Shown in pieces: positions 1 to 20,100 of a stretch of 64,000 nt of DNA. Source of the stretch: Ascidiella aspersa (taxonomy: Eukaryota); the NCBI GenBank assembly GCA_963924565.1, contig OZ004610.1:31496001-31560000 (forward strand). The letters run 5' to 3'. Made by a program: the position numbers and the translations under genes. The notes beneath the pieces are model-generated. The model was not told where the DNA came from, searched no databases, and saw nothing but the letters and a program-made list of their open reading frames with translations. Numbering within the stretch: the first letter of the stretch is position 1; every line of letters begins with the position of its first letter.

Positions 1-3000
1 CAATCATGGCATACACGAAAACTCTAAAAATGAGGAACGCCAACTTACAAAGAGACGAAGTTGCGAATTGGTCAACACGACATCACCATGCGTTAAAAAG
101 GCACTTTTTCATCTTCAAAGAATACAAGTAAATGACCAAAAGATACATAATTTCATTTTTTTATAAGAGTTTCAACTCAACATTCCGGTTTTGTATGTTT
201 ACAGCTCCTTATAAAAGAGAGAACTATCAACAAAACTAGTGAAACAGACTCTGGCACACTTCTTCAAACTCACCCTATTCTGAAATTGGAAGGCGGGGGT
301 ATGTTTTTTAAATCAGAAAACTATGATATAAATATTAGGCAGTTATATGTGTTCTTTAAATAACTAAATTCTTAATACTTTGTTTTTAATACTAATATTG
401 AAAAATGTAATTATATATTTTTGTGTCTACTTGTTATTAGAAAAATCAGTGAAAAAGCACCTTCGTTTTTTAACACCCGTGATTGAATATTCACCAACAA
501 GTGAAAAAGACACAGATAGTGAAGCACAATTGTCTGTTTCTGGAAATGCCCTTGTTCCAAGTAAGTTACCCATTTTACTTAAAAAGTTAGTAAAGTGCCA
601 AGCCTAAGGCTGCACAAGCCGCTTTTTGATTACAAAATGCATAATGTATTTTTAAGAATACAAAACTTTAAGCATGGTGTATATTTATTTGATATAATGA
701 TGATTAAATTGGGAATATACCAATTCAGATGAACCTGAAGAAGACACACAAGGTCTCTACAAGAACCAACTTACTGCACAGCAAGTTCTTATTCAGGTAA
801 CTCACGTAAAAGGTCTTCTTGCCATTACCCAAGATCACATACTTCACACTAAAACAATTTTGTATTACATATTATCACCCCATATACCTTATAATGTTTA
901 CACCAGGTTGGTGATCTCTTACGGAGACTGGAAGATGACAGAACTAAAACAGAAAAAGCTCTTTTGCAAGAACGGAATAGATTAAAAAATCTATCTCAGA
1001 AGATAGATTTAATGTCACAGCGCAGAGTGGTTTGTCTTCCTGCAGCAGTCCAAAAAGGTAATTACAATAATTTTGTACGTAGAAAATTACCAAAAAAAAT
1101 GGTATACAAATACCGCATCGCACATTGTTTGGGTTAGGGTGGGTCAAGTGTTATTATTAATAATAAATATAATAACACTTAACCACTCTCGCCCAAACGC
1201 TAACCCGCACCCTAACCCAAATAACGTGCATTGTGGTGTGCAGTATTTTTTTTTTTTTTTTTGCATAACTTTCCACAAAAGTGAAGTAGCGCCATAATTT
1301 TCTCACTGATAGTTGTTACTTTATGGTGACCAATGTCTTTATTTTGAGTTAATTCTCGAATGCCAGCTAATAAGAGTTAGGTCTATTCAAAGATTACCCA
1401 TGTGGGGTTGTGGTCATTTATTTAAACCTCCAATCTTTGTTTGCACTAACATTTTTAAATGCATCTTAAAATTATTGTTTTCCCAAACTAGCCTTGAGGT
1501 ACACAACAGTCCTACTAAACTTATGTGTACATATTTACTATATATACTTTAAACTTTCTTGTCTGAGTCAAAATCAGTCATTTATAAGTTCTAGTTATTA
1601 TTCAAGTGATAAGTGTAAACTAAAACTAGAACTTATAAATGACTGATTTTGACTCAGACAAAAAAGTCTAAAGTATATTGTTACCATTTGAAGTCAAGTA
1701 TAGCAAGAAATATTACAATAAAACTAAATAAAAAAAACATGATTTATACAATGATCAACGCATTTATTGGCAGAGCATGATGCTTGTGCATTTGATATCA
1801 GTGAGCTGCAATGGCATGTGTCCTTTACGGAAAGGCAGCTAAAAAGGGCCAAGGACTAAGTTGCAGCTGCACAAGTTCTTAATTCTAGCCTTAAGGAGGA
1901 CATCAAATTTGTCAAAAAGCATTGGTTAGTTGTGATGTTAATTTAAACAACTTACATTGGATTTACTTACTGATGTTAACCTTTAACTGTGTTGTCTATT
2001 TGATAAAAAATTAAATGTTTTTATACAGTTTAATTCTTTGTTATTCACTATATGTACCAATCCTACCAATCTTTTTACAGAAATTAAACGAGTTTAAAGT
2101 TGCAAGCAATAAACGAATATGGAGAATAAATATAATAATAAAAAGATTTGACCAACCACAACACAAACTCACACCCTAACCCAAATAATGTTAGCCATTC
2201 AAACCCCCGGACAAAAATATGGTAGGACTCTAGATCAGCACCCAAAAAAATCAGTGGTCCCATATTATTTCTAGTCAATAAAAAAGAACACATTTCAATG
2301 CTATATAAAAGAAGAAAATTCCATTCAAAAATTGTTCCATGTAAAACATTGGGAAGCTTTGGATGAATAGTATTGTTATATTGTGTTAGCTAGACATAGA
2401 TTTAATGTTTATTATTTTAAATTAGGTTCTTTTTTTATTCCTTTGTCATGAACCTGAGAAAACTAGTATTTTTGTCACAAACCAATGCTTCAATTTTTCT
2501 TTATTGTTCTATTTGATGATTTCTGTTTCACATAAAAGAGCTTTTGTTTGCTTAAATTAAATTCACAACAAAGCTAATTGATTAACAATAGGCAGACTTT
2601 AATTAAACTATATAGTTTCTCAACACCCCACCTAAAGGTCAAATCATGTTGCAATTTATGTTATAACAAAAATTGCTTTCTGGCAGTAAGGCTGTTTTTA
2701 AGGGTTGGTTGTGATTTGTGTTAATTTTTTTGCTCTGTGTTAAGCCCCCTAGTGGAGGAAAAACTGACAATGGAGAAAGAAGCAATGAAGAAAATTAAGA
2801 CATTGCAGAAAGGCACTGATGTTGTGAGTTGTGATTTGTAAAGCAGACGTTAATAGCCAACTATACTACGTCTAATACTAAGAATGATTAATTATTATCA
2901 TTCCATTAAGAAATATTTTGTCATTTTTAATTCCTAGATAGAGTTGAATTCAATTACAAAAAAGACAAACACTTTGCTATTATCATTGACCACATGTCAA

Positions 3001-6000
3001 ATTCAGCATTCTAAAAATTTAGACAAATAACAATAGGCAGGCAGCTAGCTTAAAAGTGCTTAATACTATTGAAGGATACCATTGCAACTACTTTTCCATT
3101 AAAGGAATTGTCTGATGCGAAAATAATCCTAGACAAGGCAGAACAGAAGTTTGAAGAAGCACAAGAGGCTGCTGAACAAGAGAAACGGAAAACCCAGGAT
3201 GATCTAAATGCTGTCAGACACCAACTGACATTACTAAAGTAAGTTATAATTATTTTTTTAAATGTGCTATAAACTTTGCATTGCAATATGACATTTATAT
3301 AAGTACGCAAATCCTCAAATCGGCGGATGAATTATCTATTCTAGAATAATGATCAAAGTCAATTCTGTTAAAAAACACTATATAGGAAAATGACATGTTA
3401 AACAGCAAACTGATTATATTTCATAATAACCAATCTACTCACTTTTACTAGGGTATTGTTTGGGTGCATTATCCGTAAGGTAAGGGAATACTGTATATAC
3501 TGGGCATTTCAGAGATAATAAATAAAAAATAAAGCTTCTGTCTTTAATAGGGAGGATCGATACTTTTTTTATGATACCCGGTACTAGCAAAATCATTAAT
3601 GTGTCGATCAAATACCACGTTTTGTCATTACTGCGGTCTAATAAGCAAAATATGTCAAACTTGCAAACATAAAGTTTAAACGCAAACCATAGCTAATAGG
3701 CTAAGATTAATTTAGTATCGTGTCGGCAGTGAATAGCGGCCTATAGCATCACACATATACCGATAACAACAACTGGCATAGTATATTGGTTCAGATCAGG
3801 GGTGAAGGTAGAACAGTTTTCTTACCGGAACGATAATTTTTTTCCTGGAACGCAAGAAATTTTTTAAGATTTACGTCACAAGGTTACGTCATAACAAAAC
3901 ATCTAAAACAATTATCTTAGGAAACTGGAGGTCATCGTCACAAATATGCAACTGAAATATCAGTTTACATACAAATTTAAGAAGTAACAGGACGGTCCGG
4001 TTAAAGAGGGATATTGACTGGTAGAAAAACGGCATTATCGTTCAGGGGTTCTTTAACTGGGGTCCATGGACCCCTTTGGGGTACGTGAACTAGTCCAAGG
4101 GGGTCCATGGTGCCCTAATTAAAATATTAGTGTATATTTAAAAATAATTCATTTTTTCAAAGAAAACTGTTGAATTCAAAATAAAACGTTTTTGCACTGA
4201 AGGTATATTTAGACTCCCTCACGCTTTCGCATTTTTTAAACCGGAAACATCAGATTTTTGAAGTCTATTTGTACTGTGACGTCAATTTACGAGGTCATCT
4301 ATAAAATTCCTTGCCCACACTAGTCCACGCCAAGCAAAAATATTTTTTTAAGGCGCCTGCGGTGAAAAATTTGAAGAAACCCTGCTATGGTTTTACCTCT
4401 CACTTTCCTGTTATCGTGCAGAAAGGACCTGCACCACTCACAGGCGATGCACCAGGCCTACCTAAAGAAGGCCGACCAGAGCCGGGAAAAGTTGGCGCAG
4501 CAGGAACAAGAGTTGATTGTGCTTCAGAGAAAGACTGAAGATGTACGTGAGGCCGAACAGCGCGAGATCTACCGCATCGAGGAGTTGCGTGATGAGGTGA
4601 AACAGGCGGAGTACGAGACGGGAGAGGTGACCAAGCAGAAGATGCAGCTTGAAGCCGAGATGGAGGAAATGGTGAGTACTCATCGTTTGTAAGGGATGTG
4701 CAGTATTAATAGGTCTGAGCAGATGCTAAATGACAGGCTGTTGCAACGCTTTTTGTCGGATATTGTTTAAGTGTCGGCGCCCATACGATACCTACACAAT
4801 CAATGTAGTAATTCAAGTCACGGTTGGCGATTTACTTCTACTTTGTAATATATTTTTGTTAGAAAACTGTGTTCGAGTCCGGACAAGATGTACCACATAT
4901 TTGTTTTTGTTTGTTATTCTTGTCTCTTAGATGACAATTCCGGTATGTAGGCCTAACTGATTGTCTTGTTATAAGTTTAATTCTCAAAAATGTAAAATAA
5001 AATGTGGAGTATCCGAAGTGTTGCAAGAAATGCAACTCCCTTCCATACATATTGCGCTGTCCACAACTTTTCTCATATACATGTATATATATAGCTAATT
5101 TAAGTAACAATACCGGTTATTAACATTTAAAAAATAAGTACCTAAACCTAGTGGAGTCCTTCACTCGGGTACTTATTAAGTGATTTTGAACAAAGGGCTG
5201 TGTTCTTTGGTTTAACGGAAATTTTATGCAATAATGAAAAAAAAAGTCCAGTCATGGACAATTGTTAAAGGGTAACCATGTTAGTTTAGTAAAGCGGCTA
5301 TTTTTCGTGATTCAAAAAAATGAAATTAAATATATAAACATGTCTTTGGAAGTGTCCGAAGTGCTATAGGAGCCGCACACTGTGTTGGGTCTTACACTGT
5401 GTTGGCAGTCTCGAATATAATGTGTTTCATTGGCGATTATGGCCTTCAAACTAGTAAGTAACGTCGACCGATTTCGCTTCCAGCACAGGCAAATGCGCGA
5501 CAAGATCAACGACCTGGAGTCCAAGTACAAGGACAGCTTACGCGAGCTTCGGCAAATTCAGGAGACCAACCGCGATATGAAGTACGACATCGAGGACATG
5601 AACGAGGACATTAAGACTTGGTGAGTGTTTTGGCGAATGAGGGTGTGATTAAGAGCTGTATTTGCTACGGGTAAGTAGGCGCTGGCTCCTAAGTGAGCCG
5701 TTGGCGCCTGCTTTTACAAGTTTCTTGTATATCGGACTTCATAGGACAAGCCGCTAAAATACCTGTCCTTAACTTATTGAAGTCACTTAACTTAGTCGAT
5801 ATTGCTCGTTAGGTGTATATTCACAAATCTCAGAACACACGATATAATAGCACAGTGATTCAAGCCGGTGGTTTATAAGCCGTATCTAGTAGAATGACCA
5901 TGAGTTGGCGATACTTCCAGAGTTGATTAGTATACGACGAGTTGGGCCTATATAAGTTCGTAAAATAAGTTCATCTGGTATTTATTTCGGTTAACCAATA

Positions 6001-9000
6001 AATACCACAAGAACTTCTTTTCAGTATATACAATGTCTGGTAGCAACAGCATATTTAATAACCTCCTTCGGTTGTGCAGCGACAAAGCTGTGGCCAAGTC
6101 AGAGCGTGAGATCGAACGTTACATCAAAGAGTCGGAAAAGTGCGAAGTTCAGCTGAAAAGCGCCAGCGACGAAGTCACCAACATCGCAATGATCAACATT
6201 GAGCTCAATAGTGAGTAAACATTTTGTAAATTGATGTCTAATTAATGACATTCAAATTTAACACGTTCTTTCAGCCCGAGTTTTAAAGTTTAGTACGCTC
6301 ATATTACTATTGATAGCAGATTGATACATTATTTTTACGGTTAATAATTTAGTGTGGTATGAAGGTAGTTGGTACTGTTTATTAGATTTTAAACGTTTTT
6401 TTCATCCCTGTATGGTAGTTGCTGTCTTGTCACTAAGCAAGCTTACCACGAAGAACTTATCGCCTTGCTTGTTCCACACACGGTAATTAAAGCGTGGGTA
6501 AAGGGCAGGTAGCGCAGATACGTTAGCATCAAAAAAACCTTTTAAAGGAAACCCGCCGTGTAATAATGTAATAATACATATGTGACAGTAGAGAACATTA
6601 TGATGTGGAAATTGAATACATTTTTCCACCGGTCAAAAATGTCTGTACTGTATGTGTTAATCTTTCTGCTTCCGGTTATTTCGTTTTTTTTTTAAATACG
6701 AATGATAAAAAAGCTTACATTGTGGTCCTCCATTTGGATTAATATTGCTTTAAATGTGCCGTCTATACCTTTCTGTTATACAGCTCAACTGGAAAAAGAA
6801 GAATCGAAATCACAGGCCTTGGAGGACGCCCTGAAGGTTTGTCAGCAGATTTTAAACTATAAGCTGTGGCAATATGAATACATCCATGATAAAAGTTTAC
6901 CCATGTAGGTTTTCTTTGATGAAAAAATGTCCTTGTCTGACGACGGTACATCCCTATATTTAAGTTTTCTTAAACTGTGGTAGGGGTTTCTTTAAACTGT
7001 TGGCCCCTAGGGGTCCACGAAGGCCTACTGATTAAGGGCTCCGTGAGAGCTTAATTCAAACCTTGTTATGTAATTTGAGAAATCGACAAATATTTTCAAA
7101 AGAAAATAGTTGAATTCGAAAAAGCGCCTTCTCCTTATGCTTAAATGTATTCAGACTTCATTTCAGTTTCGCATTTTGGACCGAAAATAGCAGGTTTCTT
7201 AAGTCCACTTGTTTTATGTCGTAAATTTATGACATAATCACAAATAATTTCATGCCGACCCTGGTCCACACGATCAAAATAATTGGGTAAAAAAGTTTAA
7301 GAAATTCTAATTTGTAGTGGTCTACTGCGTTTCGCAATTTGTCGATTTACTTCGTGTTCATATTTTGCGGGTTAAAAGCATTTAAAAGTTGGTCGTAATA
7401 TATTTTAATATAAACTTTTTACAATATTGGTGTATCACGTTTTTGTGCACTACTAAACACTAGAAAAAGGGGTATCCGACAAATCGTTACTTGCTTGTAG
7501 TAAGACATTAATTACCAAAACCATATACACAAGTAGATACATATGTCTACTTAAGAGTTTAACCACAAATAATCGAAATACGCTTTTCACAGCAATCTTC
7601 GGAGAGCCTGCGGAAACAAGTAAACGATGAAATGAGACAGCGAACTGCCCTAGAGTCGAAACGAGTACAAAACTCGAACGCACTCGTTAAAGGAAAAACG
7701 GGTAAGCGCATAGAGATTACAAAGTTTTGTCACAGGTTCTAGAACATTAGATTATTACTTGTAATAACGTTAGATAATATCACTCATTGTGCATCAATAT
7801 GAAAACCGTAATTAAACGTCAAAAAACAGTTTATTGTTTTTGTTATTGTTTTTTTAAGTTGAGTTACTTCTAATAATCGAACAAGTTTGGAAATTTTAAT
7901 AGTTTAACCTTAACGTTCATTTTTTATGACAAATTGTTATTTAGTTAAAAAAATTGACTTGGACTAAAGTTATTTCTCAAATGACTTGTTTACAATGCTT
8001 TTCTTGAATCAACATAGCTCATGTATCTTACAAAGCCAAATATCTCATGTTTTTTTCTAAGTAAGTAGATGATTTTAAAAGAAAGTAGAGTATTCTGATT
8101 GCAACACACGGGTTATGAAAGCTCTTTGCCTTTTTCATAGAAAACAAGAAAAAGAAACTCAAGGTTGAGAAGACTTTGGAGGAAACCCAGAACGCGGTGG
8201 ATAAAGCTTCGAATGAAGTAGGTGCTCTTCAGATGGAGCACGCAAAAACTCAAGTGGTAAGTCTTTTTATGGCTTTCATTGCTGCCAAGCCAGTGAAATA
8301 TTTGTCCTCTGTTTAAACTGCGATAAACATTATTCTGCGCCGATGAAACATTATTCTGGCCAGTCGCAGGGTCGTGCTCTTGAAAATTGCAAATACTAAA
8401 TCCTTTTGTGATATGGCGTTTTGTTACAACGTTACGTTGCATGAAAATGTTATATAGGGGTTATATATTCATCCACTCACAATACATGGTTGGAAAATAT
8501 CCACCATATGCAATCCCGCCTTGGCAATTTACATTTGGCGGCAATATCAGGTTTAAAACTGGGTAGGCCTACTGCGCATGCGCACATCAGACTCGAGGTT
8601 CAGGTAGTCTTACGTGGTCTTACTCGAGTCGCGGTCCGACTCCAGCAAAACAAACCGACTCCTCGAGTCCCGAGTCCGACTCACTTTGGTTCGGAGCAAT
8701 CTTATACCTAGACTACTTGTTTGTAAATATGCTGTTGCTACCAGTCATAGTATATTTAAAATAAGTTCCTCTGGCTTACATTTCTTTAACCAACGTTTCG
8801 GCTTACTATCCGGCAAGCCTTCGTCAGGGACTAACACACAAAGCCATCAGGGCGCAAAGTAAAATCACACAAAGAAAAAAGGAGATAAAAATATACTACT
8901 TGGTTAAGGCGACTTCTCCAGCAAAGAAATAATATTATCGCCGATGTTTCGGCTTTGCAAATATAGTTGCCATTAAATCTATGCGGAGCTAGATAAGTTG

Positions 9001-12000
9001 CATAACGCATACAACTGTGCCAGGTTTGTATCTTGCTTCAACCATCCGTGGTTGGACGCTTTACCTTTTTTTCTGAATTCATTTATAACGAGAAAAGTGG
9101 TGAAAATAAGGCAACACTGGGCTCCGGAAAAATAATTTTGCAACAGGCTGTTTCGCTATTTTTTTGGATGTATTTAATGTAAGATTTCAGGTGCATATTT
9201 GTAAACTACATCGAGCGATAAAAGTTGCTTGGTTTATTTAAGGTATTTTGCACCTTGGCAGATTGTTGCTGACCTCAACTCTAAACTCACCGCCCTGAAC
9301 GTCGAACACGAGGAAGTCGAGAAAACACTGTCCCAAGAAAAACACGAAATAGAACCCGTCGAAAGAAAGTTGCAGGTAAGGGTTACGAATTTTGACGCCG
9401 TGAAAACAGTAAGTGTCGTATTTAAGATTTGAGAGGGATTGAGTCTTTATACGGTATATAGATTTGTGTTATCGTTTAGTGCACGTACCATTTTTTGTCA
9501 CGACTCACGACTTAAGTCAATGACTTGAATTAACTGCACTTAATCAATCTTTTCAAATGACTTGACTTGACTTAAGTTTTTTGCACAATTGACTTGGGAA
9601 AAATGAAGCGATTTATTGACATTATTTTTATAAGACTGCTGGGTAACTTATCTCAATTTTTGCACTTCGAATAAATTGCTTGCTTTATGTAGCGTTTTGG
9701 TAGGTTACTTATTATACATATATTTGAACGAGTTTACCAATTTTAATAGTTTGACGTTTAATTTTTATAAAAAGGACCTTACTTGGAATAACTTGCTCTA
9801 ATAATTACTTGACTGGGACTTATTTTTTATTTAAATAGACTCTACTTGAACTTAAGTTACATAACAAATGACTTGACTAGGACTTTATTAATTTAAAAAT
9901 GACTTGTTTACAACACTGGCCGTACACATTTCGTATCCAAACAATTTAGGTGTTTATCAGCATGGAATATTTTGACAGGAAAATTTGGTCGTGCACCATT
10001 ATGAAGAGGCTTGTTTGATTGGCGAATGCTCGGTGAAATGTAATTGTGATATTTTTGTTAGGAAGAGCAAATGGCGCTGAAGGAAAAGATCAAGGAAATG
10101 GAAATGGAGGAATCTCAGATGACGCAGAAGCTGAGGGACATGACTGTGTCGCAGAATGCGATGCAAAAGCGAATCACAACTGCTGAGGCCAACATCGCAA
10201 AATTAAAGTAACAACAAAAAAGTCTGTTGTTAGGCTTATGTCTTTAGCCAGGGGCGGACCAAGCCTTTAAAAGGCCCTAAGAATTTAAGAATTTGGTGCC
10301 CTATACAGAGGCGTAGCCAGGGTATTTTGCGGCCGGGGGCAAATTATAAAATTGGCGCCCCTCCTCCATGTTGAATCACATTTTCTATTACATTAACATA
10401 ATATACCTTTCTTTATCTGGAAAAAGAGTTAAAATTTTAATAGAACATTCTATTTAAAGAAGAAGCAGCCTCATTTTGGCATTTGTAAGCCTCATTTGGC
10501 GCCCCTGTACCTTGGCGCCCAGGGACATATGTAGCTACGCCTCTGGCCTTATATGTGCCGTTCAAAATATAAACAATAACCACACAAGATATTTTTCGTC
10601 GAAATTAATCAAAACCAACATTAAGAAAGAAAAAAACAGGCCACTATTGAGGTCGGAGTCTTCTGATCAACTGGAATTATTCCATTAAATACTGAGGCAC
10701 CTTTAAAATCGTGGTCACTTGCGTATCTATTAATCGTGTTTTTTACAACCTTTTTCACGTGCGCCGGTTTTAGTGTATTATTTTGTCTTATATACAATCC
10801 TTTGGTATTTCTGAGAAGCGAAATTAACTAGCTTCTCCTTATTGTTGAGAAAGCATGCCAAGGCCCGGTTGCATTTTTTCAGGGAGGATTTGGGTGAGCT
10901 CGACATTCAACTTGAGACCAGCGAAAAAACGAACAAAAAGTTACAGCAACAGCTCGAAGAAGCTACTGGTAATCCGCAGGTTTTAGTTCGTTATTAACCG
11001 AGTATTTCTATGACAATGCTAAGAATGATACTGGACTTTTTTTTCCGATACCAAATGACGTCATTACTCTGCTCAAACAAGAACGTTAATAATAAAATGA
11101 AACGTTATAAGGCCAAGTTTTCCAGGTTTTAAAAAACTTGCTTTAGCGTAAAGAAGTCTAGTTAGGTCCAGCTGTTAACCGGTCCAAACTTTGTACTGAT
11201 CTTTCAACGTAGAATCGCTGCTTTCGATCAAAAATTATTGCTGAAATTACTATATCAATATTGGTATCGGATCGGTTACGATACCACCCTATTATTATCG
11301 AACGAGTATCGATACTTCCACTTGGCATCAGGTATCGGCTCCGATCCGATATTATCGGACATCCCTAGAACTGTTTTGGCTCTACGTAGACTAAGGCGGG
11401 GTTCATTCTTTAATGAACAAGCATCTAAAAAAATGTTAAAAATTCAAAATGATACCAACTTCTGTATGGGCTTTGATATTCTTCTTATTACATTTAAAAG
11501 AACAGAACAAAGTTTCTATATAGGTGCGAGGGAAAAATTGTTTGTTTTCTGGTACTAGCACGCCTGGAAGACCGCAAGAAAGAGCACGGAAATTTGATGG
11601 AGAAAAGGATAAAGATTAGAAGGAATCTAGAAAAAAATGTCCAGAAGGAAGTAGCAACCAATATCATGGTCGCACAAAAGTACAGGTGAATTTTGACTTG
11701 TAGCCAGAGGGTATGTTGACTAGTAGCCAGAGGGTATTTTTTCTTCGTATGTGGTAAGCCTAAAGGCTGGTTCACAGCGTCGTCCAGTTCACACATTATA
11801 ACACGTTGCCAGCATTAACGGTAAATTTTCGAAAGCGTCAAAGTTGAATTATTATAACTTTCCGCAACAGAAAGCGTTTTTCAAAAAACGTTTTACGTTA
11901 ACACTAGACGCGTCTAGTGTAAACCAGCCTTAACGCAGGGCCAAATTAAGGGTACTGTTGGACAAAGTCTGTTTTGTTTACTAGAGAACAAAGCTACAAA

Positions 12001-14158
12001 AAGTAACTCAGTCATTTGTTTTAAGCAAAAACATGTATTAAATGGTACAGGATTTGTATCACTATCAGCGACCCTGGTCCAACGCAGTGGTTTTTAACTG
12101 GGTGCCAGCAAAAAAAATATACAAATTTGCAGTAGGCTATGAATGATAAAATAATATATGTAAAGTGCTATACTTGTGTAGCAGGTTCGAGCCTTGGTAT
12201 TTCTTAACGTTATTTACCCAACTGTATCAAACAGCAGTTACCGTTGGGAACTAGTAACAAAATAAAATATCAGATAACACCAATTGTTTCAGGGAACTGC
12301 AGAGCCAGCAGATCGATCTCAAGAACCGGTTTATGAACATGTACGACGTCAAAGTCAAGTTAGAAGCAAGTATCAAAGACCACAAACAGGTAATAGTTGT
12401 TTGGAATACAATTTTTGGTCATCTTGTGCACTTTACTGAAAATCGCACGCCTATGTGAACAACTGAACATATGTATCTGAATTTCGCTATCCAAAGCCTT
12501 ACAAGCTGTGGGGTCGAACTCGGACTTGGGACTCGACGAAGTCAGTTTGTTTTGCTGGAGTCGAACTCTGGACTCGAGCAAAACTACCCGATTCCCACGT
12601 TCGTATTACCAAGTTTTAAAACTAATATGGACGCAAATTGTAAAGGCGGAATAGCATATGGTGGATATTTTCCAACAATGTTTTAAGTGGATGAGTTGTA
12701 TCAAACCTTATAAGTGAATTTCTGAATAGCCACCGTATTTAGTTATCTAAGTGGTGGAATACAGGCGGAGCCGGACTCGGGACTCGACGAATCGATTAAA
12801 TTGCACATTTGGCCAGACTCGGGGTTATTTTTAACCGACTCCGCAGCCCTACACGGCATATTTTTTCGTGCGTTAACTTAAACAATACTGCAATTGAATT
12901 ATTTTTATTTTAGCTGCTGAAACTCCAGGAAAAGTTAAACGCGGCTTTGCGGCAATACTACCACGATCGCGGAGAATTCAACCAAGCGGGGTTGACCAAG
13001 TTCTACGTTCAGTCACAGGTAAGTAGATTAAAACAAGATAGAAATCAGCCAAACATATAGAAATTGGGTGATCAAATGAAATCTGCTCTATTGAGTTTTA
13101 TTGTTTTACTGTTTGCAGTTCGATAATAATATAATATTAAACAGTAACTACTCCAAGATGTAGCAAAACCTTCTTATATTAGCACCTAATAAGTCAAACT
13201 GGGGGGCGCTAGATACACACACCTATGTGTTTAACTGTGACCTAGTCCTTCTGAGGTTGATTTTTGACCAACGATTACGGCTTACGTATAATTAGTACAC
13301 CGTAAGCCATCGCAGACTTCACCGAATCGGTCGATCAATGATGCAAGCAGGGCAGGCACTTGCCCGGTGAATCTGCGAATACTTAATGTGCACTAGGTTT
13401 AAACTTCAACAGTGGTTAAAGGGTCAGAAGCTACCCCAAATTGCGTCGTTGTTTGTTTTTTTACGAAACGACCTGGAGGGTGACCAAACACTATATATAT
13501 GACGAAACTCACTAGGGTGTGAAAAACTAGGGTCAGTCATAAGTAAACAACACCTGCAAAGCATGGTATTATAGAGCTGCTAATTTGTATGTCAAACTGG
13601 AAGTCGAACCAAGAAGCAGCATAAGAGAAGTCCGTCTTCTGAACATAATCACCCAAATCTTAAGCATACTTAAAAAGGCAAAAGAAATTCGCATTTACGC
13701 AGTCTCAAACCTCCCCACTATGGACTTACCGCCGTGGGCTGCACTAGAAATCAAAGGCATTCCTTTCTGGGCTGGATTATGACAGTCAACGTTGTTCGTA
13801 GCGTCCCGTCGAACAGCTTCGCATGCCTGGGTTTAAACCACCCTGGTCCAGCCAATAACACTTTCAATGTCAAAATACCAAGTAAAATGACATATTTTCA
13901 AATCTATGAACGTAGCAGTCGTATAAGCCCACAATATAAATCACCAGCGCGTGTGAGACCCTTTCCTTTTATTTGGCGTATAACAACGCGGTGTCTCGAT
14001 GCTATTCGCAGAACAACACGAGCATGATGATGGGCGTGCAGAACGGGCTGGAGATCGCGATCGACAACATCTCGCTCTTTCTCAAGTCGCAAATCGACGG
14101 AACGGCCACCACGCGCGTCCACCAGGCGGCGCAAGAGTGGCTCGCAGCTCCGTCGTGA
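1..14158 (+). CDS. CCDC178: CCDC178-like coiled-coil protein, 5' end outside the window, 21 coding exons visible, one in-frame TAA at 1857-1859
   Basis: Phase-consistent GT-AG exons: <1-127, 205-298, 441-560, 729-796, 907-1057, 1774-1924, 2745-2823, 3105-3238, 4422-4671, 5484-5620, 6080-6210, 6784-6836, 7593-7701, 8141-8256, 9262-9375, 10062-10207, 10883-10968, 11559-11685, 12293-12389, 12914-13018, 14012-14158 (TGA). Motifs RRSCELVNTTSPCV, LPAAVQKEHDACAFDISELQWH, FMNMYDVKVKLEASIKDHKQL and FLKSQIDGT resemble vertebrate CCDC178 as I remember it (SCALVNIPAPCV, LPLAVQKEHEAYLSDVIELQWH, FFQTLTDGT). Confidence 0.85.
5650..5915 (+). repeat. Interspersed repeat shared with 19330-19615
   Basis: Collinear GGGTAAGTAGGC...CCGCTAAAA.ACCTGTCCTTAACTT...ATTGCTCGTTA.GT.TATATTCACAAATC...CACAGTGATTC in both copies. 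Confidence 0.8.
8786..8834 (-). ncRNA. Minimal type-I hammerhead motif (family A)
   Basis: Minus: TTAGTCC-CTGACGA-A-GGCTTGC-CGGATA-GTAAGCC-GAAA-CG-TT-GGTTAA. 7-bp stem II, palindromic ACGT stem III, bulged stem I. Confidence 0.7.
10306..10545. mobile_element. MITE nested in an older CAGGGGCGG-type element
   Basis: TIR CAGAGGCGTAGC / GCTACGCCTCTG; TSD GCCCTATA/GCCTTATA. Confidence 0.8.
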
Positions 14159-17100
14159 TCACGTGATACGAAGGCCGCTCAGGTTCTGACGGAGGTTGAG
14201 CGCCTCTTTGTTTTGTCGAGTCTTTTCCGTCTGGAAAGCTTGTTTCGTAGCCTTCTTCTCTTGTCGACGTTCCTGTTGCGTTTTTTTATGGTTGTTTTTT
14301 TTTGTTGCGCGTCGCAAAATACACAAGTGTGTTGGGATAACGGCCTGGGGTGTATGCGAACCGCAGGACTGTATCAGTTTGGGTCGTTACTGCCTGGATC
14401 GATTTGGGGGGGTTATTAGGTATTATAAACCTTCAATAATTGGAATCTCGCAAACATAATTAAGGAGTGCATTGGGTTTATCTATGTATTAAAGCTTTCG
14501 TACTTGGAATCTCGAAAACATAATTAGTGAGTTTATTGGGTTTAACTATGTATTAAACCGTTACTATTTTGTGATCTCGTAAACATATTTGTGAACCCGA
14601 CAACGTGTTATAATTGAAGGTCGTTGCAAATTATAGCTAAAAGTACAACATTTTTTAAATCCATAGTTTCGTGCAAATTAAAAAAAGGCATTATTCTTTT
14701 TTAACACTATATTCGGTTTCGTCGTTAAGAAAACGCCAGAAAATATTTTAGTATTATTGTGTATCAAATTATATATCACAACCTTCCGAGCCTCTTTTAC
14801 TGCCTTCTTTCTCAATGATTTTTCCTCTTTGCTTTCGTCTTTATTTCGTATGTGAATTGCAGGAGTTTCTTCGCTTTCATCGGGTTCTTCTGGCTCGTTT
14901 AGTTGAGCAAGCTTTATCAGGCAAACAATAGAGATTAAAAAGCAATTTGGTGTTGTATGATGGCAAACCCACGTTCAGGAAAACAAGTTACCTGTTTTTT
15001 AGTCAGTCTTCGCTTTTCTTGTACTGGCATCCCCGTTCGTTCGGAAATTTTAATTTTCTGAAACAATTTAACTTGTTAGATATAGTTTTTTTTATGCAAA
15101 TTAAGCTTTAAGATTTTTTACCTTGATTTGTGAATATTTTATTAAATACATTACTCTTGTAAGGCATCCTCAGTCCTCACCTATTCCTACTCTTACCAGC
15201 TTGTCTAAACAAGCATATTTAAAGTATATTTTAAAGGGAATTATACTTTGTATTAAGTGTATGCGAAATTCCTCTTTGCCAGGCGAACCTAGACATTTTC
15301 TGTTTCTTGTGCGACCCGCTGTCAAAAATAATTGCCCACCTCTGAGTTAGTTAGAGCAATGTTGAGTAAAAAAGGCTCCAAGCGTCCAAGGCCTTTCATT
15401 GTGGTTTTGTGGTAATTTTTGGCATTTTAAGAAACTAATCATGCTTAGAACTAGCTAGTTAGAGCATCAGATACGCCTCAAGGTTTATAAATCGGACATT
15501 ATTTCCGGTAAGTGGAGTGACATAGTTAGTTTGCATCACAAATCACTAATAAGAAACGGTTTATTGTCTTCATCAACAAACACTTCATATAAGTAAATAT
15601 CATTACAGTGACAATACCGTGTGATAAGTTATTAGCGAGTTTCGGAACAATATTGAATTCTTAAGACCCGCGAAAAAACGTTTACATCAAAATTTTTAAA
15701 TTATTAACCTAATTGCACTATGTCACACCTTGTGAATTGTTACAAGAATAACTCTCTAAAAGAAAAAAACTACTTAACTTATCAACAGAACAAAATACAC
15801 TTACTTTCGGTTCCTCAATTAGTCTTGGGTGATTGTACAGCGTTGAATACGTACCTGGGTGAGCAAAAACGAATTTAAATCTCAAATAAACTTCCAATAA
15901 TAATGGTAGGGCAAAATAAAAGGAGCTCACTTAAAATTGATTCACAATCCCATTTTTCCTTTTCAACCTCTTTTACAATTGGAACCATGTCATCTTCATT
16001 TGTGGCGGTATGCAAGAGTAGACACTTTTCCTTTTCTGGCATGTCTTCCGGCTCCCTAAATTAAATCGTTATTTAAACATTTAGGATTTTTTTTCAAAAT
16101 TAGTCAGTTTTAAATTTTTATGTTAAATAACTATGTTAAATTACTGTTTTCATGACAAATTTAGTTTTGTAGATTTAGTAAAAAGTTTTAAAATTTCAGG
16201 CAAGACGCAGGGTGGGCATAATGTAGATGCAGTTTTGGGTTTCTGGGGTCTGCCCCCCTAAGGGCCTTTATTTGGGGTGACAAAAACTCCAAAATTCTGT
16301 GATATTATTATTTTAAAGTAATCGCTTAATAGAAATAATTATTTTGCAAAAACCACTTACTCATTTTCTTCAATGATCCCCAAGAGCATTTTGATTTCCT
16401 GCTTTTGTTCCAATTCATCAACCGGAATGTTCCCATCGATTTCAACTTGGGCGAGATCACCAATACATTCGTCATCATAGCTCTCAAAAAACTACATGAA
16501 CAATCAATAATTAATATTAAAAAAACATTTTCCTGACGATTTTTTCATCACTTGGTTAACAAAAAAGGAGTTAAGCAAAAAAATAAAACATTAGTTTACC
16601 AAAAAAAAACATAAGGCGAAAAAGTTGTTTACTTTTAATTTGGGCACTAGCAAAACTCGTCTATTGTGTTCCTCTTATTTAGAAGGTTTATTATTCATGG
16701 GCGTTAAAGTTCAGTTGTACACATAAATGAAAAGCACACAAGGTTTAATGGGAAGAATACAATGACAATTCCAACTCAAACCAATAATTACTGCACCATA
16801 GGGACGCAACATGTGCATGCTGCAGCAGTAGACTCTTAAAGTAAAATGGCCGAACTATGTTAAAGTTGTCGTACCTTCTCAAACCGGTCATCCAGGTGAC
16901 TTAAATTCTCATTTCTTCTCATTACGGATGACGTCATCGAGTAGCTGGTGAAACGAGACTTGGTTTCTTCCTCGGAAAAGTAACTTTCATCATCATCGTC
17001 ACCAAACTCACTGGAAAAGTCATCTTCACTTTCACCATCTGTTTCTTCTTCTGGGGTTGTTCTGAAATAGTAAAACTATTTCATCGAAAATAAATAAAAG

Positions 17101-20100
17101 TGCTACCTGTTTAGTTCTTATATTGCTACACAATTGATAGAGCTCAATAAATCCTGCTACCTATTAGATTCCTCAGGGAAGAAATGATTTACAACAAAAA
17201 GTTAATGATAATGAAACACAGAATCTGATTTAGGAGTAACTATTCAGTTTTAGTATGTAAATGATTTTCTAATGGGATTAAAACAAACAATTGGATATTC
17301 TGAGTAATTATTTAATAAACCTAACTGGTATAACACATGTCAATGGCAACATTTTCAACTTTTGTTAATTTCATTGTAGAATGGTTTTTGTATTGAAGCT
17401 TTAAAAAGTATAAAAAAAACATTGACACAGTGGTAAATGTATCGCACTAATGGTAAGCAACTACCCTTTCTTTTCATCGAATGGAAGCCCATCAATATGA
17501 CAGTTATTTCATATATGGCTTTTAAGCTTAAAACTTTGTAACCTAGATATGCATTTATCAGTGCTGTAATGAATTGACTTAAGTCACTGTGTTAAAATAA
17601 CTTTCAGTAAATTCAGTACAAAAAGTCTCTGGGACAAATTACTTGTGTTAAGTCTATGACTTGACTTAAGTATGATTGAGTCATTAGGTTAAATAACTTG
17701 ATTTAACATCTCTTTCAATTTTCAATTAGCTGGTTATATAGGTTATTTTAGTTTAGGTATTGCTCATTATCTTCAAGTTTACCAATTTTAATAGTTTAAC
17801 TTATTTTTTTACAATTGACATGACTAGGGCAAATGATGACTTGAACTTTGACTTGACTAGTTATTTTTACTAATGACTGGACTTAAGTCATTTCCAAAAT
17901 CCCTACATATATTTTTTATTGGAATTGTTAAAAAATCTAATGTTTGGCATTAACCGCACAGTAAAGTTCACCTATGTTGTGGCTGACTGGCTTGAATAAT
18001 GAAATTATCCTCAAGGAGGTTGTCTGGGTCTTCAAAGTTGAAATCTTCTTCCAATCCTGCAACGATGTCAGGATCCCAACTTGGCTGCGGACCTGAAAAA
18101 ATACATAGTCATAAATCGCAACCTTATAGTTTTTGGAGCATAAAGGTTGTAGTAAGACTTAATAAGAATATCTCAAAGCCCAGAAGTATGTATCATTTTG
18201 AACGTTTCGAATAACTCTTTTCATTTTCAACATAGAGAGAAGGCACTGATTAGAAGTGTATATTATAATGCGGAGGCAGACTTCAGATAGAAGGAAACAA
18301 GGAGACATACACTATCTAAACCAGGGTGTGCGGCTTTAAGAAGGATTAGTGTATTATTTGAATAAACACTGTGTCTAGTGTCGCACTTCGCCTCAAGCAA
18401 AAACGTATCTTGTTTATGTCCTTCATTTTAGATGTGATTTGTTGAGTGTAAACAGAGGTACTTTTGTTGCGGCGTAAGTTTTTTTGTTTTGTGTTGAATA
18501 TAGCGTGGTAACCTTTGTTTATTGTATACTTTCGAATTAAGTAACTTAGTTGTTGTAACCATCATTGTGTTTATTGACCGTTAACTGATAAAGACATCAA
18601 CTTTCAATCACAATTAAGAAAGAAAATTTAATGTTTTGTTACCTTTCGGTGGTATGGCGCGATGTAACATTCCAATTTTCTCCTCTGTTGTTGAACCGAA
18701 GACTACTGAAGGTAACCTCAGAATGGTGTCGTCTTCTCTTGTAATCTCAGTCACTTCTTCATTTCCATCCATTGGTTGCATTTCAAAGCTGACTGAAATA
18801 AAATACAGTTGCTCCAGATAACAGTGCTTATTAATTTATTATGTGTGATAAGTGACGAAAAAATGTCTAAAGACAGATATTACATACATGAATATTCACG
18901 GAAAACACTCCCTCTAAAAAAACTGTTGCTACCAGGCATAGTAATATAATTCAAAAACAGCTCCTCTGGTAATTGTAATTCTTTACTGACATTTCGGCAA
19001 CCTATGCAAGTCGCCTTCTTCAGGGTGAATGACACCAAAAGCTCATAGTACAATATATGGAAAACACACAGAGGTAAAAATGCAAGAAAAAGACCCTTGT
19101 AACAACACAATAAAAAGTAACAACATGTATTTAATTAATAACACTACCTCTATGATCTTCTTTTGGTACCAAAATTGCTATTTCTTTATCCTGTGGTGCC
19201 CTCATATGTTGCATATAGTTGTAATCGTCATCAAACTGAACTCCATAAATTCTCTGCTCACTCCAACGTTCTTCTCTTTCAATCGGCGTCTTACAGAAAT
19301 AAAAAAGGTGTAAGATTTAGGGATTAAAAGCTGTGTAGTTGATACGGGTAAGTAGGCATTGGCTCTTAGGGTGCAAGCCGGCGGCTGCATAAGTTTTTTA
19401 TTCGTTCCTAGTTACACCTCTAAGGAGCCGCTAAAAGACCTGTCCTTAACTTCTTGAACTCGACAGAGCCACTTCACTCAGTTGGTATTGCTCGTTAAGT
19501 ATATATTCACAAATCGCAGTACAAACGATAAGATAACACAGTGATTCCGATACTGCTAGTATAAAAGTAGAATGAATCGCTAAACACCACACTCGCCTGG
19601 GCGTTGGCAACACCTTAGTGTACACAAGTTATGGTGATGTCAAGTTGGGTAACACAGTGGTAAGTTAAGGAAAACTACTCCCTATCGCTACAAAGAGAAG
19701 GATTAATTCCTTTATTCTAAAGATTGTTGTATATCTTTATGATATATGACTAACTTCTTCAAAATTTCTGTTTTCGGAGGGATGTTGCCCTTCCATTGGG
19801 ACGAGGACCCTTTGCGGAGCATCTTCATCTGCAGCCAGGGGATCTTTTTGACTCCTGAGAATAGTAATGAAATTATGAAGAAGTACTGAATTAGTCTAAC
19901 AATTATGTGTTCTAGATGATTAGTGCTTTTAAGATCATTTTTAAGAAATGGCATTCTTTCCAATTATTATTGGTATAGTTTGTTTTCAATGTTGATTGAT
20001 ATAGTGAATGTTTTACAAGATTGACACTCACTTTTATAACAAAATTCAAATCTTACATTTTCAAATAAATTTTCGGAATATTCAAAGAAAATACCTAAAA

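Follow-up and report, generated by a model that had tools for sequence, protein, structure and literature searches.

In a 64,000-nucleotide (nt) stretch of the genome of the ascidian Ascidiella aspersa (GenBank assembly GCA_963924565.1, contig OZ004610.1, positions 31,496,001 to 31,560,000 of the forward strand; hereafter the window, numbered from its first letter), two protein-coding genes run toward each other until their stop codons touch: a plus-strand gene assigned to an ascidian 'CCDC178-like' family and a minus-strand gene identified as LTV1. They lie on opposite strands of one locus, their 3' ends face each other, and exons of their mature transcripts overlap. We put at about 0.7 the probability that this is a genuine tail-to-tail pair of coding genes, each with its polyadenylation (poly(A)) signal inside its partner, and probably a tolerated by-product of genome compaction. 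Such placement of each cleavage and polyadenylation signal within the other gene would be tolerated in the way common in sea squirts, and would not amount to a dedicated regulatory device; at most, the two genes might interfere with each other incidentally when both are active in the same cell.

The coding sequence of the CCDC178-like gene ends on the plus strand in ...CCG TCG TGA at 14150-14158, directly followed by TCA CGT GAT at 14159-14167. The TCA at 14159-14161 is TGA on the minus strand, and the twelve bases at 14159-14170, TCA CGT GAT ACG, read CGT ATC ACG TGA on that strand. The stop-to-stop gap is 0 base pairs (bp), and intergenic DNA is therefore absent between the two coding regions. 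A preliminary description of the window, made from the letters alone, had proposed convergent genes with a 0-bp stop gap inside the palindrome CGTGATCACG, and sequence and reading frames agree with it. The abutting stops are unaltered in the covering contigs of three sequencing runs (X1, X2, and X3). The palindrome itself, together with a second one that overlaps it, is judged to be a by-product of TGA/TCA plus chance and evidence of nothing. Its core, TGATCA, is forced because TGA directly abuts TCA; growth to 10 nt requires only two extra complementary pairs (a chance of about 1/16), and there are 157 perfect 10-nt palindromes in the window, so that a role of the palindrome as a signal was ruled out.

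Four runs were mapped on 12800-15200. X1 and X2 were DNA-like, with continuous contigs of even depth. X3 was RNA-like and unstranded, with spliced contigs and a depth of 25-30 in exons versus 0.8-2.3 in LTV1 introns other than the last. X4 consisted of the raw reads of a paired, stranded RNA-Seq library, mapped with a likeness threshold of 95%. In X4, the joint 13015->14009 (GT..AG; with the cut shifted by +3, 13018/14012) was crossed by 16 reads, all with the first mate on the minus strand and none with it on the plus strand, and one X3 contig crossed it too. The joint 14911->14992 (CT..AC), which removes the 80-nt intron of LTV1, was crossed by eight reads, all with the first mate on the plus strand and none on the minus strand. 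From these orientations (16:0 and 0:8) it follows that first mates on the minus strand report plus-strand RNA (CCDC178-like sense) and first mates on the plus strand report minus-strand RNA (LTV1 sense). The last LTV1 intron appeared as the joint 14271->14782 (CT..AC; with the cut shifted by +1, 14272/14783) in two X3 contigs. The exon borders first proposed, 14012 and 14272, are equal to these RNA joints, and the check suggested at the time, for use of a different terminal exon by either gene, shows both predicted terminal exons in use.

RNA of both strands covers 14015-14257 in this one stranded sample, which is a real sense-antisense pair. Over 14015-14176 depth was 8.35 and 7.83 in the LTV1 sense against 10.7 and 10.2 in the CCDC178-like sense, with five and 12 reads respectively at 14165. 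The two senses stood at 2.69 and 16.9 over 14177-14257, and at 0.42 and 8.6 over 14258-14338, where plus-strand RNA extends past the LTV1 exon border at 14272 (seven CCDC178-like-sense reads and no LTV1-sense reads at 14290-14314). The stranded depth supports the proposed complementarity of at least 260 nt between the two messenger RNAs (mRNAs; 14012-14272, 261 nt), and the overlap is probably longer than that. Both-strand coverage and joints together also bear out the claim that the 3' untranslated region (UTR) of each gene is antisense to the last coding exon of its partner.

We placed both 3' ends from depth and hexamers. For LTV1, the AATAAA at 13968-13973 (TTTATT on the plus strand) is the only canonical hexamer (AATAAA or ATTAAA) on the minus strand within 13300-14158, and LTV1-sense depth stands at about 8 before dropping to 1.1 in the 13934-14014 bin, in agreement with the poly(A) signal originally named for this gene. 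The LTV1 3'UTR would thus lie antisense to the entire final exon of the CCDC178-like gene as well as to its 3' splice site. In the other direction, reads show the CCDC178-like 3'UTR over 14159-14338, a stretch that lies antisense to all of LTV1's last coding exon plus 66 nt of its last intron. Beyond it, the plus strand has no AATAAA between 13300 and 15300 and bears ATTAAA at 14488, 14552, 14677, and 14934. CCDC178-like-sense depth in X4 was 0-2.4 over 14339-14581, then 10.7, 18.2, 11.9, 5.0, and 2.0 in the bins of 14582-14986, and 0.33 afterwards, while RNA-like X3 contigs tile 14009-14785 unbroken at a depth of 19-50. We consider it fairly probable that the CCDC178-like 3'UTR runs for about 800 nt to near 14950, past the ATTAAA at 14934 and through the last intron and the penultimate exon of LTV1. 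The plus-strand RNA at 14582-14950 would then belong to the CCDC178-like mRNA, and its passage through the penultimate exon (14783-14911) would add 129 nt of mRNA complementarity. Both motifs named in the preliminary description (TTTATT at 13968-13973 and ATTAAA at 14488-14493) are present in the sequence, yet the reads do not support 14488 as the main CCDC178-like end, since plus-strand RNA returns over 14582-14824, at a depth of 10-18, and is lost only near 14950.

Several points weigh against this account. The X4 sample is thin, with 145 reads mapped from about six in 100 of the run, and LTV1-sense depth is low (2.7 over 14177-14257). The last-intron joint of LTV1 is unlisted for X4, meaning fewer than three reads where about eight would be expected at that depth. 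Among the rows listed, the mapped read tables show no poly(A)-tailed reads or clear molecule ends. X4 is without plus-sense reads over 14339-14500, and the continuity of the long 3'UTR leans on the unstranded X3 contigs and on an assumed failure of reads at the 95% threshold. Differences 4-5 nt from either side of the LTV1 joint (14267 and 14786) may lie behind its absence from X4. As for the gap at 14339-14500, it may represent polymorphic, indel-rich reads that miss the threshold. Low depth, along with wrong-strand reads elsewhere (1.1-1.8 against 18 at 12881-13042), could even be taken to mean that the mRNAs do not really overlap and that antisense coverage comes from a library artefact or from genomic DNA carry-over. 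We find this hardly credible: the wrong-strand leak at control exons is 4-10%, against depths of about 8 and 10.5 on the two strands over 14015-14176; DNA carry-over is excluded because no X4 reads fall on the intron stretch 13367-13933; and with a 0-bp gap any 3'UTR must overlap the coding exon of the partner. Less far-fetched, though still unlikely, is that a separate transcript antisense to LTV1 (such as a long non-coding RNA or the product of an internal start) accounts for the plus-strand RNA at 14582-14950, and that the CCDC178-like mRNA ends near 14340-14520, with the ATTAAA at 14488 as one candidate signal. The zero plus-sense depth of the gap would fit such a transcript, as would the X3 depth, which is higher over 14258-14785 (19-41) than in the CCDC178-like exon 12912-13015 (about 9-14), unlike what a plain 3'UTR predicts; an RNA-like X3 contig at depth 10 over the intron sequence 13261-14038 likewise points to extra transcripts at the locus. 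However, X4 covers 14582-14824 as deeply (10.7-18.2) as it does the CCDC178-like coding exons (10-18), the X3 tiling is unbroken where other LTV1 introns show 0.8-2.3, the X4 reads bordering the gap carry at least five differences and indels, which makes mapping failure plausible, and no joint or start is listed at 14582-14950. A single long CCDC178-like 3'UTR is the reading we favour.

The overlap could also be a working regulatory module, in which strong CCDC178-like transcription, with spermatids and ciliated cells as possible settings, would lower LTV1 output through collision of polymerases or through an mRNA duplex feeding small interfering RNA (siRNA) or ADAR; the reverse direction is conceivable too. 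We hold this to be improbable. Both sense RNAs do occur at similar depth over at least 240 nt in one sample, and a study of yeast (PMC6993858) reports mRNA duplexes between convergent genes with a short intergenic distance, but convergent overlaps of this sort are common, and for the majority no function has been demonstrated. At this low depth the overlap showed no clustered A>G or T>C changes of the kind that editing would leave; hyper-edited reads would have failed the 95% filter. The exons of the overlap have the highest GC content at third codon positions (GC3) of their genes, which would stabilise a duplex: 0.88 for the last CCDC178-like exon, against 0.26-0.83 in the others, and 0.57 for the last LTV1 exon, against 0.29-0.39. 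GC3 of the CCDC178-like gene is strongly variable anyway, however, and other exons of it are also high (0.75 and 0.83). In Phallusia, the CCDC178-like protein stops exactly where that of A. aspersa does (...EWLETPS vs ...EWLAAPS), but among ascidians this stop drifts from four residues shorter to about seven longer: the protein ends earlier by one residue in Ciona, by two in Clavelina, and by four in two further relatives (P0003 and P0010), and about seven residues later in Styela. Because this end varies, stops that touch at exactly 0 bp may be common to no more than a single family. A stronger version, in which selection in phlebobranch ascidians has kept the zero spacer as a switch, with strong CCDC178-like transcription in spermatids or ciliated cells driving a 3'UTR of about 800 nt through the last two exons of LTV1 and lowering LTV1 and 40S maturation by collision or by duplex and siRNA, is in our view very improbable. 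If true, such a selected switch would tie terminal differentiation to a halt in ribosome biogenesis. The explanation we prefer remains a tolerated by-product of compaction.

Sequence differences within the overlap were also recorded. Those in the last coding exon of LTV1 (at 14165, 14168, 14171 with 14173, and 14267) are all synonymous for LTV1, and coding constraint on the LTV1 strand therefore dominates there. In X4, a T>C difference at 14087, which would change Ser to Pro in a conserved stretch, was carried by four of six CCDC178-like-sense reads (two starts) and by none of ten LTV1-sense reads, and a haplotype at 14165-14173 was seen in 7/12 and 1/5 reads, respectively. Allele-specific use of the genes may underlie these skews, as may the noise of a small sample of molecules.

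For both genes, searches were run exon by exon, with no joined spliced model. The 83-residue plus-strand exon at 4423-4671, compared with a representative library of 1.84 billion proteins, matched nine at an expect value (E) of 0.001 or less, among them a full-length protein of 839 residues (P0003, E 1e-19). A word-based search with P0003 returned 25 proteins. They include proteins called 'coiled-coil domain-containing protein 178-like' from Ciona intestinalis (P0012, in full 'CCDC178-like isoform X1'), Phallusia mammillata (P0013), and Styela clava (P0014), an uncharacterized protein of Clavelina (P0011), and, from Lingula and Mytilus, proteins named CCDC178 or CCDC178-like that are about 30% identical to P0003; there was no vertebrate sequence among the 25. 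Local tblastn on window positions 1-16000 was run with nine of 33 proteins, and the match tables of three of them give 15 (P0003), 16 (P0012), and 13 (P0014) exon matches in colinear order, the first at 26-127 and the last at 14000-14152. The first 15 or so residues of the relatives found no match in the window, and the gene may therefore start at or before its left end. The last exon is open from the splice acceptor ttcgcag/AAC at 14012 to TGA (48 residues) and is 65% identical to the C-termini of P0003 and P0012, while a loose end before 12912 (19 reads) bears the sequence of the preceding CCDC178-like exon. A Pfam scan of ten plus-strand exon pieces gave none above any cut-off. Its best match, TMF_TATA_bd (22.6 bits against a cut-off of 29.1), was rejected as generic coiled-coil similarity. 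Judged by its relatives, whose names are automatic NCBI/UniRef labels, the plus-strand gene is supported as a member of an ascidian 'CCDC178-like' family, and it is at this level, through the 13-16 colinear exon matches, that the original name CCDC178 holds. The accompanying guess of a germline or cilia gene would be consistent with mouse CCDC178, which a review (PMC12123824) describes as mainly testis-expressed and needed for spermiogenesis. The source of P0003 is a 4181-nt Logan contig with about 1.66 kb beyond the coding sequence, roughly the excess that would result if CCDC178-like and LTV1 mRNAs had been fused tail-to-tail by unstranded assembly in that species too.

On the minus strand, nine stop-free pieces between 14162 and 19895 were scanned singly with Pfam. 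Four exceeded the gathering score of the LTV family (PF04180, 28 bits) with 32.8, 40.7, 34.3, and 39.9 bits, one had an LTV match below the cut-off (13.8 bits), and three had no match; the piece of the last exon gave a chance, sub-threshold match to Connexin (12.2 bits). The matches cover profile positions 8-43, 59-100, 155-196, 271-330, and 347-372, colinear and in descending window order, so that the four above the cut-off span positions 8-330 and all together 8-372. The last-exon frame, from 14272 down to the stop, encodes 37 residues, and residues 1-36 of these align to the very end (440-475) of human LTV1 in pre-40S structures (475 residues; 6g18_t, E 6.7e-6); the ascidian protein runs one residue beyond the conserved basic C-terminal tail. 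No first exon of LTV1 was located among the exon pieces seen in the window. In a six-frame search of the whole assembly (308.6 Mb, 75 contigs), in which only the best candidates were scored, the four LTV matches all fell within the window, and LTV1 looks single-copy in this genome. Family match, single locus, and similarity to the human C-terminus agree with the name LTV1 given at the outset, and family membership predicts a role in maturation of the 40S subunit.

Table 1. Features of the locus in window coordinates.
Feature	Positions	Strand	Evidence and remarks
CCDC178-like coding part seen in window	26-14158	+	tblastn of P0003, P0012, P0014
CCDC178-like penultimate coding exon	12912-13018	+	RNA joint; loose end before 12912
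CCDC178-like last intron	13019-14011	+	joint; contains high-copy repeat 13205-13366 and LTV1 poly(A) signal
CCDC178-like last coding exon, stop TGA 14156-14158	14012-14158	+	reads NNTSMMMGVQNGLEIAIDNISLFLKSQIDGTATTRVHQAAQEWLAAPS, then stop; GC 0.61, GC3 0.88
CCDC178-like 3'UTR, read-shown part	14159-14338	+	X4 depth, first mate on minus strand: 16.9 (14177-14257), 8.6 (14258-14338)
CCDC178-like 3'UTR, probable continuation; end near 14950 approximate	14339-14955	+	X4 depth, X3 contigs, hexamers
LTV1 3'UTR, about 210 nt, AATAAA 13968-13973; end probably near 13950	13950-14158	-	X4 depth, hexamer
Palindrome CGTGATCACG, 10 nt	14154-14163		sequence; spans abutting stops
Palindrome ATCACGTGAT, 10 nt, overlapping CGTGATCACG	14158-14167		sequence; pair together spans 14154-14167
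LTV1 last coding exon, stop 14159-14161 (TCA on plus strand)	14159-14272	-	frame ERRQEKKATKQAFQTEKTRQNKEALNLRQNLSGLRIT, then stop; human LTV1 alignment, RNA joint
LTV1 last intron	14273-14782	-	RNA joint; holds 64-nt tandem duplication 14426-14553
64-nt tandem duplication, 2 copies, 83% identity	14426-14553		repeat search; in LTV1 last intron
LTV1 penultimate coding exon (...RNKDESKEEKSLRKKAVKEARK)	14783-14911	-	joints 14271->14782 and 14911->14992, translation
LTV1 80-nt intron	14912-14991	-	8 spliced X4 reads and one contig
Remaining LTV1 in window: exon 14992-15057, then exon pieces to 19740-19895	14992-19895	-	joint 14911->14992, Pfam LTV matches

The two copies of the 64-nt duplication in the last LTV1 intron each end by creating a plus-strand ATTAAA, at 14488 and 14552; Tandem Repeats Finder reported three small arrays on 13000-15500 and missed this duplication. 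A very high-copy interspersed repeat occupies 12800-12880 and 13205-13366, in or beside the last CCDC178-like intron, with a summed contig depth in the DNA-like runs of 6e4-2.9e5 (7.6e4-2.9e5 at 13205-13366) against a baseline of 65-137, and a few RNA reads in both orientations fall on it. Most of that intron is also covered by the X3 contig mentioned above (778 nt, 13261-14038), while X3 has no contig over 13043-13204 and X4 no reads on the stretch of the X3 contig. This contig could stem from LTV1 transcription running beyond the poly(A) signal, from intron retention, or from a repeat-started transcript.

The locus illustrates, cleanly and with read support, the closest packing open to two convergent coding genes that share no codons, and in it the last coding exon of an apparently single-copy, essential-type ribosome-assembly gene is wholly covered by the 3'UTR of its neighbour. 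Annotation of this genome has to let UTRs extend across adjacent coding sequence, and transcripts assembled without strand information may join the two genes into one. The locus could also serve to test antisense effects in ascidians. LTV1 and CCDC178 are not known to be neighbours in human. A literature search, with subscription journals outside its reach, found nothing naming LTV1 together with CCDC178, and the pair appears unreported in the literature searched.

The type of arrangement, by contrast with this particular pair, is long known and ordinary in compact sea-squirt genomes, to which the pair adds one example, opening no new question. Thousands of cis-antisense pairs have been catalogued in mammals (PMC1449890, PMC2811022), and the catalogue of ten species by Zhang et al., 2006 (PMC1524920), reports convergent pairs as the predominant antisense class in sea squirt. 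LTV1 and the CCDC178-like gene match the convergent cis-natural antisense pairs described there, being coding genes on opposite strands that overlap by their last exons and 3'UTRs. They differ from that class in that the spacer is exactly 0 bp and each 3'UTR covers a coding exon of the partner, not just its UTR. With the duplex-forming convergent genes of yeast they share a minimal intergenic distance and complementary mRNA 3' ends; for the yeast pairs, PMC6993858 reports duplexes and post-transcriptional effects as demonstrated, whereas the ascidian pair is an animal locus with introns, known from sequence and RNA coverage. Further parallels are vertebrate pairs such as MSH6/FBXO11 and POLR2B/IGFBP7, named by Zhang et al., 2006, where a housekeeping gene likewise stands tail-to-tail with an unrelated gene; conservation over four vertebrates is given there as a feature of those vertebrate pairs.

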